Below, in pieces: positions 23,666 through 28,030 of a DNA stretch of 33,000 nucleotides. The stretch comes from Dicyema japonicum (Eukaryota > Animalia > Dicyemida): contig RDEW01000052.1 of the NCBI GenBank assembly GCA_011109175.1, forward strand, positions 93,001 through 126,000. Reading direction: 5' to 3'. Each line of letters begins with the position of its first letter. The first letter of the stretch is position 1. The position numbers and the translations under genes were made by a program. The notes under the pieces were generated by a model. That model had not been told where the DNA came from, made no database searches, and worked only from the letters and a program-made list of their open reading frames with translations.

Positions 23666-24234
23666 GTCTAGACTCTAGAGTCTCTCAAGAACTTATTTTT
23701 CACGTATAGCTCTCCCCATTGCATGCGTGGTATTTGGAGATTTATGGAATATAAGGTCTTCGTCGAACGTGGAAATACTTCTAGATAGTAAGTTCGCGAA
23801 AGATGACAGTTTTTAATACTTCTCTTCTGAAAGTCCACAATTTTAATATGAAACTTTGGGATAGAAAATTGTTTAAATTTTTTTCATCTTGAGGGTAAAA
23901 CTGCTAAAGAATCCAGGCCTCACGACATGATTTTAAAAAAGAAACATCCTCACCAGAAGGGTTTGAACAAAAAGGTACAGGGGTCGTCTGCCATAGGAGG
24001 GTGTTTTTACTCATAAAAAACTGTCTCATGGGAGCAATTCATTGGGGTAGAATTAGAACTGCGGCAGTCAGATATCTTTATGCATTTTCTTTCTACCCGT
24101 GAATTACGCCTTTCAGGCCCAACTATAGTTGGTTGATGAGATTACCAAGATTCCTTAAAGGTACTCAAGCTTGCTTCCAACCTTAAAGGTACTTAAGTTT
24201 TTTTTGTTTAATGAATTTTTCATTAATGAATATT

Positions 24235-24567
24235 TTACTTAATGAATCAGAGAAAGGCAATAGTGAATTAAATAAAGAAAAAATTTATAACTTCATTATT
24301 GGAATATCAATCGGAGGAAATTCCAATATTATTTATGGATGAAACAAATATAAACATGCACATATCCCGTAAAAAGGGTCGATCAAAAAAAGGAACAAGG
24401 GCTAATGTCGTTGCAACAAGTTCGTGAGGTGCCAATGTACATTTCATTTATGAATTCAAACGTGGATCCTTTAATAAAGAATCCGCCCATGAATGGGTGA
24501 GAATTTGTCTGCGAAAAGGCAGGCAAGTTTACAATTTTCCTGTAGTGCTAGTAGTAGACAATGCTCC
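24235..24567 (+). mobile_element. Tc1/IS630-like transposase, left part (first two catalytic Asp), interrupted at DNAP
   Basis: ILFMDETNINMHISR..GRSKKG, GANVH, EFKRGSF, VVLVVDNAP. It continues seamlessly at 26981 (CHSGVEE). Confidence 0.85.
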
Positions 24568-24572
24568 GGTAA

Positions 24573-24787
24573 CCGGTAAATTCATCGCCGGTAATTCATC
24601 GCTGGTTCATCGCCGGTAAATTCATCGCTGGTAATTCATCGCCGGTAAATTCATCGCGGTAATTCATCGCGGTAAATTCATCGCTGGTAAATTCATCGCG
24701 GTAATTTCATCGCCGTAAATTCATCGCGAGGTAAATTCATCGCCGGTAAATTCATCGCTGGTAAATTCATCGCGGTTAATTCAAGCG
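24573..24787 (+). repeat. Tandem array of about 15 units of CCGGTAAATTCATCG (11-16 nt variants) at the left end of the MULE insertion
   Basis: Directly readable head-to-tail units with no spacers. The array starts at the Tc1 breakpoint and ends at ACCACGTGG. Confidence 0.95.
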
Positions 24788-25224
24788 ACCACGTGGGTTC
24801 TTAAAAAAAGAGGTCGAAATTTTGATTTTTTATATTATAGTTAAATTGCGATTTTGGAGATTATTCGGCGATAGGAATCATGTATCCGTGACGGTAGGAC
24901 CTATGAAAACTGAAGAGAGGGGACCTATTTTTTCACCTCTCTTCAGAAGTTGACGTATGCCTGCCATGTATTATTGGCGGGATCAATTTAGTTATCACAA
25001 GCAGACGTTCTCTTTTGCGTTCCCTCCTTGGATTAATTACCAATGACTGTTTTTGCTAGGCTTACCAAAGATTGTACGCCTGTGGCTTACAAATAATAAA
25101 ATAAATAACTCTGTCAGTATTCATCTATATACGACGATTGAAACATAAAATTGCCAGTTTTCTTTAGTGCTGAGGACAGTATTCATCTCTATCTTAAACA
25201 CAAGAGTAATGGTAATAAATTTAT

Positions 25225-25740
25225 TTATAACAATAACTTCTTCTTGTCGAAAAAGCGCAGGTCGATTCGCTAGACACAAGGCTATAAATGAAGTGGTGAA
25301 GCGCGCCCTCGAGTTGGCGGGATACCCATCCATTCTAGAGCCAACGGGCTTGAAGTAGGGATGATGGGAAGCGACCCGATGGAATTACTGTCTTCCCCTT
25401 CTCTCGGGGCAAATGCTTAATTTGGGATGCTGCCTGTACTGACAGCTTTTCCCAGTCGAAACTTTTGAGGTCGGCAATGAAAGCGGGAGAGGCCGCCCGT
25501 TTATATGAAAACTCAAAAATAAAGAAATACAGCAGCCTCCTAAACCGTTTCCATGTACAGCCAGTGGTCGTCGAGACGAGCGGAGTCTTTGGCCCCAAGA
25601 CGGTCTCTTTCCTTAGAGCACTTGGGTGTCTATTGACCAAAGCCTCGAGGGAGCGTCGGGAAACCGAGTGGCTTTTCCAAGGATATCCTTGGCAGTAGTC
25701 AGAGGTAACAGCCACTCGATCAGAGTAATGGTTGCATTTA
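25225..25740 (+). mobile_element. CRE-clade retrotransposon 3' fragment (zinc knuckle end and RLE), inserted in the MULE 5' region
   Basis: [65 protein letters not shown]. Confidence 0.88.
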
Positions 25741-25909
25741 ATTGTGTTTCTTTTAACTGATAAAGTAGCTTATAATCTGTTGATAATGTCCTTGAATTCT
25801 TTTGTAATGTGGTGATAATGCCCTTGAATTCTTTTGTACTTTATCGTCATTATCATAATTGATTACTATAAAGTGATATTTTTTCGCTAATTTCTTATAT
25901 CTTGACAGC

Positions 25910-26980
25910 ATGGCTTTGCAATTTGTAATGAGTGATAGAAATATGAGAAAACTTTTTTTAGATGGATACATTTACTGTTTTTGAAAAATTTAATGGCGAA
26001 GTCACATTATGGAAATGTGAATCCTACTACAAAATTAAATGTAAAGCGAGAGTACACACCAAGGGAGACATCATTATTAAAAGAGTCAACGAACACAATC
26101 ATGCTGGTGATGCTGCATATGTCGAATCAAAGAGAATTACTCAAGAAATAAAAAGAAGAGCTCTTGCATCACAAGATAATCCACATATTATTACGACTGA
26201 AGTGTGTGTGGGTTTGCCACTAGAGGTGTCTGCCCGACTACCCATAGCTTCTTTAATTAAAAGAAACATTAGAAATTCAAGAAATGCAAAAGATCAAGCT
26301 CCTCCTAATCCACTTAACATAGACCAGTTAAGAATACCTCCAGAATACAGATACTCTTATGCCAATGAACCTTTTCTATTGTTTGATAGTGAAGACAGTG
26401 TTAACAGAACAATAATTTTTACAACGAGAAAAAATCTGAATTTGCTTTCCACTACAAACTTTTGGTATGCGGATGGTACTTTTAAGACAGTCCCATATTT
26501 GTTTAATCAATTATATACGATTCATGGACTAGTAAATAATGATGTTTTACCACTTATATACATTTTAATGTGTAAAAGAACGGAAGAAAGCTATAAAAAA
26601 GTTTTTTCGGAATTAAAATCATTGGAGCCATCGTTATCACCGAGGACAATTATGACTGATTTCGAAAAAGCAGCTATAAATGGATTTAATATTATATTTC
26701 CTGATGCTATTACGAAGGGCTGTTTCTTTCATTTGTCCCAATCCATATTTAGATGCATCCAATCACAGGGATTGCAATTATTATATCAGAGAGATTCAGA
26801 ATTCGCTTTGAAAATGCGCATGATTGCGGCGCTGGCATTTGTCCCAACATTACACGTTGTTCATTATTTTGAACATTTGTGCGATTACAACAGTTTCCCA
26901 GAAGAAGCTCAACCTGTACTGGATTATGTAAAAGATATTTGGATAGGACGTCCCGACCGCCGTCAAGTACGTCGTTGTCC
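25910..26980 (+). mobile_element. MULE (FLYWCH + DDE) transposase, C-terminally truncated
   Basis: The natural start is MALQFVMSDRNMRKLFLDGYIY (ATG 25910), with a +1 shift at about 25975. Motifs: WKC...KCKARV...HNH (FLYWCH), WYADGTFK, QLYTIHG, IMTDFE, GCFFHLSQS. Confidence 0.93.
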
Positions 26981-27185
26981 ATGCCATTCAGGAGTTGAAG
27001 AAATTGTCAGAGATAATGAATTCATCGGAAATAAAATTTTAAGATTGGGTCCCTATAGCCCTATGCTCAACCCAATTGAAAATATTTGCTCAGTTTTCAA
27101 AGCTGATGTAAAAATACACATTGCTACAGATATGAAAAATATTTTGGATGGTGTGAGACAAGTAGAGATTTTGCTACAGATATAA
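25962..27185 (+). CDS. 407-aa chimeric ORF: MULE transposase fused in frame to a Tc1/IS630 C-terminus
   Basis: Stop-free frame with junction RRCP|CHSGVEE at 26980/26981. The distal part ILRLGPYSPMLNPIENICSVFKADVK is the DDE_3 third-Glu motif. Confidence 0.8.
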   Translation: MDTFTVFEKFNGEVTLWKCESYYKIKCKARVHTKGDIIIKRVNEHNHAGDAAYVESKRITQEIKRRALASQDNPHIITTEVCVGLPLEVSARLPIASLIKRNIRNSRNAKDQAPPNPLNIDQLRIPPEYRYSYANEPFLLFDSEDSVNRTIIFTTRKNLNLLSTTNFWYADGTFKTVPYLFNQLYTIHGLVNNDVLPLIYILMCKRTEESYKKVFSELKSLEPSLSPRTIMTDFEKAAINGFNIIFPDAITKGCFFHLSQSIFRCIQSQGLQLLYQRDSEFALKMRMIAALAFVPTLHVVHYFEHLCDYNSFPEEAQPVLDYVKDIWIGRPDRRQVRRCPCHSGVEEIVRDNEFIGNKILRLGPYSPMLNPIENICSVFKADVKIHIATDMKNILDGVRQVEILLQI

Positions 27186-27200
27186 CAGAAGTGTTTGTAT
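26981..27200 (+). mobile_element. Tc1/IS630-like transposase, right part
   Basis: CHS..., LGPYSPMLNPIE. It completes the element broken at 24567. Confidence 0.85.
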
Positions 27201-27564
27201 TCCTAATCAATCCTCTCCATAAATTAAGGAATCCAGCAATTATCAATTTTTTAAAGGTATTAGACTTCCGCTGTCCTCAGACTTTACTTGCCACAATATT
27301 GTAAAAAAATTGGCTAGACAGAAAATTGCCAATATACAGTAGGACCCCGCCCCAATCAAACCCCGGCCCTGGGGCACCCTCTGTATTTGGGGCTATTTTT
27401 TAAATAAATATAATTATAAATGATCTTTTACATTTTTTCACATTTTTCGTTCAATAAATTCAAAATAAAAACCCCGCTTTTTGGGGCACTTTCTCTATAG
27501 AAAATTTAAAAATCTATTATTTAATTTTTATCTTTAATTTATTAATTTTCAAATAATTGTAAGC

Positions 27565-28030
27565 ATGCCTTCGAAGTTTAGTCGTCATTTGAAACAACAG
27601 ATTTTCGATTCTTTAATAAATCAAAAAATAATTCACCGGGCAGACCTTCTTCTCAAGCAGAGGAAATGAAAAATGCTAAGTATTCGGATATCAGCGACAG
27701 GTACATTTTCACACCTGTCGCGAGCGAAACTTCGGGGAACTTTGGCCCTAAAACGCTGAAGTTCCTGAATCATCTTGGAAAACTACTATCCGACAAAACT
27801 GGTGATCTTCGTGAGACGAGATGGCTCAAGGAGAGGCTCTCGTTGGCTGTTGTCCGTGGGAATAGCTTGTGCATCTCCAAACAGCTGAATAATTAAAATT
27901 AACTATTCTTTTTCTTTATAATAAACCAAATATGTCAGAAATAAAAATTTGTCGATTATACAAGATTGGAAAAGGAACTGTTTCTCGAATTAAAAAAGAA
28001 ATTGGAAAGGAAAACACAAAAAAACAGTTT
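27565..28030 (+). mobile_element. N-terminal HTH of a DNA transposase, split by the CRE insertion at 27631-27896
   Basis: MPSKFSRHLKQQIFDSLINQK joins NMSEIKICRLYKIGKGTVSRIKKE (HTH-like). The GC-rich motifs at 27342-27385 may be a terminus. Confidence 0.45.
27631..27896 (+). mobile_element. CRE-clade retrotransposon 3' fragment
   Basis: KNAKYSD...FTPVASETSG.FGP...RETRWLKERLSLAVVRGNS. Confidence 0.85.

Follow-up and report, generated by a model that had tools for sequence, protein, structure and literature searches.

A nested-transposon relic in Dicyema japonicum in which a truncated MULE transposase frame runs into a Tc1 tail

We analyzed a locus within a 33,000-nucleotide stretch of Dicyema japonicum DNA (hereafter the window; positions 93001-126000 of its contig), and the assembly searched comprised 67.5 Mb in 377 contigs. 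The locus is a nested-transposon relic, tidy but ordinary, of new members of known superfamilies. Its history probably consisted of two steps, an insertion of a MULE into a Tc1 copy and a later microhomology deletion, with an in-frame transposase fusion left behind as a non-functional by-product. The features on which this reading is based are as follows.

24242..24567, + strand: decayed left piece of a Tc1/IS630-type (DDE_3) element, matching the sibling L032 at 1501-1864.
24559..24567, no strand: inferred MULE target site, (C)AATGCTCC, the retained copy of an 8-9 bp duplication, abutting the MULE terminus.
24568..25213, + strand: MULE left arm with the terminus GGTAACCGGTAAATTC, the subterminal array, and the 5' non-coding region, from sibling comparison.
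25214..25721, + strand: 5'-truncated retroelement fragment of 508 bp, the 3' end of a reverse-transcriptase element, from sibling comparison.
25722..26981, + strand: MULE body, cut after ...RRCP, with 98-99% identity to 6 or more siblings.
25962..27185, + strand: chimeric ORF of 407 aa, from the ORF list, Pfam, and an AlphaFold model.
26978..26981, no strand: TCCA microhomology of 4 bp at the deletion junction, from the comparison of MULE and Tc1 copies.
26981..27162, + strand: right piece of the Tc1/DDE_3 element (CHSGVEE...LNPIEN...GVRQ), matching L032 at 1865-2046 with 97.3% identity and no gap.

The Tc1 copy in the window corresponded to positions 1501-2046 of L032 only, an internal 546-bp-equivalent fragment of an element of approximately 1.6 kb that is truncated on both sides and retains neither element end. 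The left piece differed from L032 by 1.8% substitutions and by deletions of 8 and 30 bp. Its one-frame translation (24242-24567; ...ILFMDETN...SS*GANVHFI...VVLVVDNA(P)) contains the first Asp in FMDETN, the second Asp in VVDNAP at the right edge, and an in-frame TGA stop at 24425-24427, which is a CGA-to-TGA change relative to L032. The DDE_3 scores of the left and right pieces (18.5 and 20.7 bits, respectively) were both under the cut-off, and homology to the Tc1 family ended at 27162; therefore, the natural C-terminus is absent. Because of the double truncation, the stop codon, the two deletions, and the substitutions, the Tc1 piece is, judged by its sequence, a decayed internal fragment rather than a gene. 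The first-pass annotation of this DNA had described a Tc1 gene, of which the assignment to Tc1/DDE_3 stands and the word gene does not.

Complete Tc1 siblings in the assembly were approximately 1.6 kb in length and possessed inverted terminal arrays of a 21-bp unit with the common termini CTATACCATTTCAGG. All 16 sibling ends examined begin CTATACC..., so the TA inside it may belong to the duplication or to the end. The L032 ORF (at least 306 aa) scored 75.9 bits against DDE_3 (PF13358, cut-off 28.6), and the siblings exhibited the motifs DE...DNAPCH...NPIE, with 35 residues separating the second Asp and the Glu. In the window, the left piece ends with ...GACAATGCTCC at 24567, and the Tc1 sequence resumes at A26981 TGCCATTC, whereas L032 reads ...GACAATGCTCC-A-TGCCATTC... 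without a break. Searches of the assembly with the two flanks revealed many copies in which the left and right pieces adjoin directly, and an 80-bp junction probe detected no fewer than 14 Tc1 copies that run across the insertion point without interruption. Because these empty-site copies read through, the split Tc1 sequence has neither lost nor gained a base. Both the placement of the break at 24567 (DNAP) and of the resumption at 26981 (CHS), and the exactness of the join, as first proposed from the letters of the window, agree with the uninterrupted siblings.

In regards to the MULE, the left terminus at 24568 was the same as in the siblings L003, L004, and L005 and is the true family terminus. 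It is followed by a subterminal array (24573-24783) in which a 14-15 bp unit is repeated approximately 15 times, and the left arm as a whole exhibited 92-94% identity to the siblings. The family is young. Its complete members are 2.6-2.8 kb in length, begin with GGTAACCGGTAAATTC, end with the complement of GGTTCTAGGTAAATTC, and carry inverted arrays of the 14-15 bp unit; of the two ends, only the left one survives in the window copy, as the annotation had stated. Target duplications of 8-9 bp were observed in 5 of the 5 complete siblings examined (L003-L006 and L011). All of the siblings compared (at least 6) carry on past 26981 with MULE sequence, reading ...TCCA and then CGTTTTGCC..., which encodes RFAHELWNC...KTNNSCEGWHH. 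The window MULE is without the right ~0.86 kb (864 bp by L004), including the right end and the catalytic Glu (KTNNSCEGWHH). The empty sites, the true terminus, and the 8-9 bp duplications fit the earlier claim that a MULE was nested in the Tc1 element and lost its right part. As to the proposed check of recovering intact copies, complete MULE siblings and uninterrupted Tc1 copies were found in the assembly.

The MULE domain (PF10551) was detected at residues 168-260 with 58.6 bits against a cut-off of 27.6, and the sibling L004 and the homolog P0001 were likewise above the cut-off. A search of the protein database returned 498 homologs with a best identity of 61%. These are typically proteins of 465 aa with FLYWCH and MULE domains, and those named by source are from arthropods and molluscs. 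In alignments of 89 relatives, D, D, C, H, and the W of LWN were invariant, and the E of TNNxxEGWH was nearly so. This Mutator-like catalytic set (D, D, C/DxxH, W, E) is complete in the family and incomplete in the truncated window copy, which keeps D171 (26472-26474), D233 (26658-26660), and C254 and H257 (CxxH), and is without the invariant W of LWN and the native E, both of which are present in L004. The residues assigned earlier to MULE catalysis, namely, the Asp of ADGTF, the Asp of MTDFE, and a deleted distal Glu, are confirmed: D171 and D233 do not vary within the family, and the native Glu is encoded past the break. The best Foldseek matches were to the IS256-family transposase ISCth4 (6xgx and 6xg8; E 2e-5 to 5e-4), followed by Hermes and the P element, which places the fold among the RNase H-like transposases of the IS256, hAT, and P-element groups.

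The 5' part of the MULE copy is disturbed in two ways. The native start is an ATG at 25911 (MALQFVMSDRNMRKLFLDGYIY) that matches the family N-terminus. Compared with most of 10 other copies, this copy has one additional T at 25978, which shifts the start out of frame, in agreement with the frameshift noted at about 25975. Furthermore, the 508-bp retroelement fragment is flanked by an 11-bp duplication, AGAGTAATGGT (25203-25213 and 25722-25732), and L004 is continuous across this point; the fragment inserted in the MULE 5' region at some time. More than 25 copies of the fragment with 98-99% identity were found in the assembly, and longer copies of the retroelement encode an RVT_1 reverse transcriptase plus a C-terminal domain.

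We compared the two junctions of the MULE with the corresponding sites in the siblings. The nine bases to the left of the MULE terminus are CAATGCTCC, and uninterrupted Tc1 copies hold (C)AATGCTCC once. The true terminus thus abuts an intact target, which demonstrates that the MULE inserted into a Tc1 copy. At the right junction, TCCA is common to the MULE interior (...GTTGTCCA) and to the Tc1 target (...GCTCCA). Along the 80-bp junction probe, MULE copies matched positions 1-40 and Tc1 copies matched positions 37-80, giving an overlap of 4 bases. The shared bases reported previously at this junction are therefore real, and their length is corrected from TCC to TCCA (4 bp). The left junction and the right junction were each found once in the 67.5-Mb assembly; the junction does not recur elsewhere, which was one of the checks suggested at the outset.

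In the first step of the two-step history, a FLYWCH-MULE integrated by normal transposase action between the DNAP and CHS codons. A canonical insertion of this kind would repeat the target site (C)AATGCTCC to the right of the MULE, followed by ATGCC.... In the second step, a double-strand break or a replication slip would have been resolved by the annealing of two TCCA sites, of which the outer one would comprise the last three bases of the right duplication and the next Tc1 base, and the inner one would lie in MULE coding sequence. The resulting deletion of ~0.86-0.87 kb would have removed the MULE right end together with one copy of the duplication. The Tc1 sequence appears to resume exactly because the deletion would have taken exactly one duplication copy. 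We infer this second step, the loss of the right end and of one duplication copy, because the lost copy is no longer visible, a point that counts against the two-step history. A second such point is the coincidence that the deletion ends exactly at the duplication boundary, which is removed only if the break occurred at the element end. The transposase itself may have cut the MULE right end in an abortive excision, with a short resection on the flank side afterwards, and such a cut would explain the position of the outer breakpoint at the duplication boundary. Muta1 generates target duplications of 8-9 bp (PMC5225508), as does the MULE family of the window. MULE transposases make double-strand breaks with hairpins on the flank (PMC5499845), and donor-site repair after Muta1 excision usually takes out the element plus one duplication copy (PMC5499845; PMC5225508).

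Two further routes to the right junction were considered and rejected. Repair from an ectopic Tc1 copy is disfavored because no additional sequence from the left part of Tc1 is present on the right side of the MULE remnant, and the use of a cryptic right end by the transposase is disfavored because past the MULE break there is no second copy of the duplication.

The same junctions might also have arisen by a single aberrant integration, in which case the right-hand duplication never existed. The left end alone might have undergone strand transfer, or an excised MULE degraded from the right might have been captured at a break, and the broken MULE interior would then have been joined to the other target end via TCCA. 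Such an event would account for the exact resumption of Tc1 without any coincidence, given that, on the standard staggered-cut geometry, the left-end nick would fall precisely at the C|A boundary; the exact left terminus, the absence of any missing target base, and the microhomology at the right junction are likewise in keeping with it. However, it requires a non-canonical reaction plus a second break, and the family exhibits canonical insertions, with 8-9 bp duplications in all five complete copies. Sequence alone gives nothing to tell it from insertion followed by deletion, and we consider it unlikely.

The quality of the assembly bears on both junctions and on single-base details. Each of the MULE copies examined contained 2-7 private indels of 1-2 bp, although the closest copies differed by only 0.1-0.8% substitutions, and none of 10 MULE siblings held a full open frame. 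This pattern suggests uncorrected long-read indel errors, and for this reason, features that depend on one base, among them the frameshift at 25978, may be erroneous. The private indels, whose frequency in each MULE copy is similar to that of substitutions, the frame-shifted pieces in which HSP70 loci come in this assembly, and the uniqueness of both junctions might be taken to mean that the junction is an artefact of a collapsed or chimeric long-read consensus and is not real in the organism. We regard this as very improbable: small indel noise does not make a deletion of ~0.87 kb, a mis-join is unlikely to re-enter Tc1 in the very copy and at the very base where it had left, via a 4-bp microhomology, and on the left the terminus meets the target in canonical fashion. 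Insertion followed by deletion is the reading that we retain as probable.

The fusion itself is the ORF of 407 aa at 25962..27185 (+), which is stop-free as described in the first-pass annotation. Residues 1-340 are MULE, P340 is common to both parents, residues 341-400 are the Tc1 tail, and the final 7 residues are unrelated sequence, giving a post-junction tail of 67 residues overall. Since TCCA falls in an identical codon phase (xxT CCA, Pro) in the two genes, the MULE frame continues directly as that of Tc1, and the tail is stop-free because it is simply the Tc1 reading frame. The in-frame fusion is an accident with a prior of about one third. Pfam placed FLYWCH at residues 7-47, MULE at 168-260, and a weak DDE_3 match at 356-385. 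The MULE part is cut 28 residues before the native catalytic Glu, whereas the Glu of the Tc1 N-x-x-E motif (E373 in LNPIEN, codon 27078-27080) lies 33 residues past the junction.

The first-pass annotation inferred that the fusion assembles a D-D-E set from two superfamilies, which would comprise D171, D233, and E373, and MAFFT aligned the Tc1 NPIEN (E373) onto the family N-x-x-EGWH. The alignment supplied to AlphaFold for the chimera was prepared by MAFFT with the Tc1 tail over the MULE C-terminal columns, which biases the model toward a native-like tail. The predicted structure exhibited pLDDT values above 90 for residues 11-340 and of 27-44 for residues 343-390, which include E373, whereas the intact relative P0001, modeled with essentially the same alignment, gave a mean pLDDT of 94.4 with no segment below 50. 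Since the pLDDT of the tail was low despite a favorable alignment and the intact control was confident, the models provide no structural support for a composite D-D-E active site. As to the suggested AlphaFold check of whether the three acidic residues converge, the MULE part of the model is confident and the tail is unstructured. Together with the absence of the Trp and native Glu, the pLDDT below 50 around E373, the single remaining end, and the unique junctions, this result leaves the D-D-E claim unsupported; the annotation had itself called activity doubtful. The D214/D283/E419 triad of Muta1 is required outright for transposition, and full activity and accurate excision depend on W401, the W401F substitution having cut transposition by 79% and halved precise excision (PMC5225508). 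The chimera is without equivalents of Muta1 W401 and E419.

A functional chimera would be either the composite D-D-E enzyme or an interfering truncated transposase, the more plausible variant being a DNA-binding truncated protein that hinders the active MULE family. The reading frame stays open from the FLYWCH domain across the junction, AlphaFold models the FLYWCH and RNase H-like core with high confidence, the N-x-x-E spacing is 33 against 28 residues with the MAFFT alignment noted above, and the left MULE arm, presumably with a promoter, is still present. However, the tail is unstructured in a model biased towards it while the intact control is confident, and the invariant Trp and native Glu, whose Muta1 equivalents are needed for transposition, are absent. 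Moreover, the native start is frameshifted, the 5' region is broken by the 508-bp insertion, the fusion is a single copy, and a DDE_3 domain beside MULE was found in none of the best 120 of the 498 homologs. Of the element ends, only the MULE left end remains, with neither end left in the Tc1 fragment, and each junction, occurring once in 67.5 Mb, gives no sign of propagation. We regard a functional product of any kind as extremely unlikely. By analogy with KP-type P elements, a truncated protein expressed from the MULE left arm could conceivably act as a trans-dominant inhibitor of the MULE family, but this idea is hardly credible, and a replacement of the lost Glu helix by the Tc1 N-x-x-E helix would be far less likely still. 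On the sequence and the models, the fusion is best read as almost certainly dead and non-functional.

The locus shows in good resolution how two unrelated transposase frames can be fused when a nested insertion is followed by a microhomology deletion, and among the papers listed in our literature search there was no direct precedent for chimeric transposases formed by nested insertion. The exact loss of one duplication copy echoes the unusual donor-site repair of Muta1, and the locus could serve as a natural footprint of a Muta1-like repair pathway in an animal genome. It gives no evidence for a new enzyme or for domain shuffling kept by selection, and the finding adds little.

The elements at this locus can be compared with three known systems. 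The Tc1 siblings resemble Tc1/mariner-IS630 elements in the DDE_3 triad, the inverted terminal arrays, and the size of ~1.6 kb, whereas the window copy differs in being an internal fragment with a stop and two deletions. The MULE family shares with Muta1 and other animal FLYWCH-MULEs the FLYWCH finger, the MULE DDE domain with D, D, CxxH, W, and TNNxxE, the 8-9 bp duplications, the subterminal repeats at the ends, and relatives of ~465 aa (PMC5225508, PMC5499845). The best database relative of the window family is 61% identical. In contrast to Muta1-type elements, the window copy has lost ~0.86 kb on the right, with W, E, the C-terminal helices, and the right end, is frameshifted at its start, and holds a nested retroelement. 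The Mu-end-adjacent deletions in maize are comparable to the deletion at this locus. The miniaturisation of a Tc1/mariner element is a case of microhomology-mediated transposon deletion (PMC3814204). Deletions of this type share with the present one a homology of a few bases and the loss of part of the element, probably after a break. At this locus, however, the outer breakpoint is the far edge of the target duplication, which makes the host transposon look fully repaired and joins two transposase frames into one.

A nested retroelement and further repeats lie in and around the decayed Tc1 fragment and the Mutator-like element (MULE) that splits it. The features in the window are as follows.

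23700–23967, unclassified repeat beside the Tc1 fragment (one copy at 91% identity, many at about 80%)
25214–25721, 5'-truncated reverse-transcriptase retroelement fragment inside the MULE, flanked by an 11-bp duplication, AGAGTAATGGT (25203–25213 and 25722–25732)
27332–27600, unclassified repeat beside the Tc1 fragment (about 15 copies, 95–99% identity)
27666–27896, 76-aa ORF, matching at 56% identity (BLASTP, E 1e-22) the C-terminal domain found in retroelements of the type nested in the MULE

The assembly holds over 25 copies of the retroelement family nested in the MULE, at 98–99% identity, which suggests recent activity. In longer members (L020), RVT_1 is encoded together with a C-terminal region with Cys/His and RPDG...D...K motifs; this region gave no Pfam match and may resemble the restriction-like endonuclease of R2-type elements. 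The 76-aa ORF is a second such fragment in the window, more diverged than the nested one and a short way to the right of the Tc1 piece.

Three MULE copies with right ends (L003, L008, and L009) recur about 6.9 kb apart on one contig (G000:C35:871800–888400), which suggests a tandem segmental duplication carrying the MULE. Among the near-identical sibling MULE copies (L002–L013), private 1–2 bp indels were about as common as substitutions. Conserved HSP70 genes were broken into overlapping frame-shifted pieces (G000:C57:749396–751033 and C46:605131–606976). These results indicate that the assembly probably contains uncorrected long-read indel errors, which bear on every ORF-based reading in the Dicyema japonicum genome.

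Tc1/DDE_3 copies of about 1.6 kb occur elsewhere in the assembly (L032, G000:C279:462026–465389, element at about 785–2410 within; siblings L033–L040). They share 98–99% identity, carry an uninterrupted reading frame of 306 aa, and have a 21-bp repeat arrayed in inverted orientation at their termini; this family may thus still be capable of transposition. CTATACC starts all of the ends; if the element proper begins at TACC, each copy would therefore lie within C-TA...TA-G, a setting reminiscent of the CTAG target of IS630.
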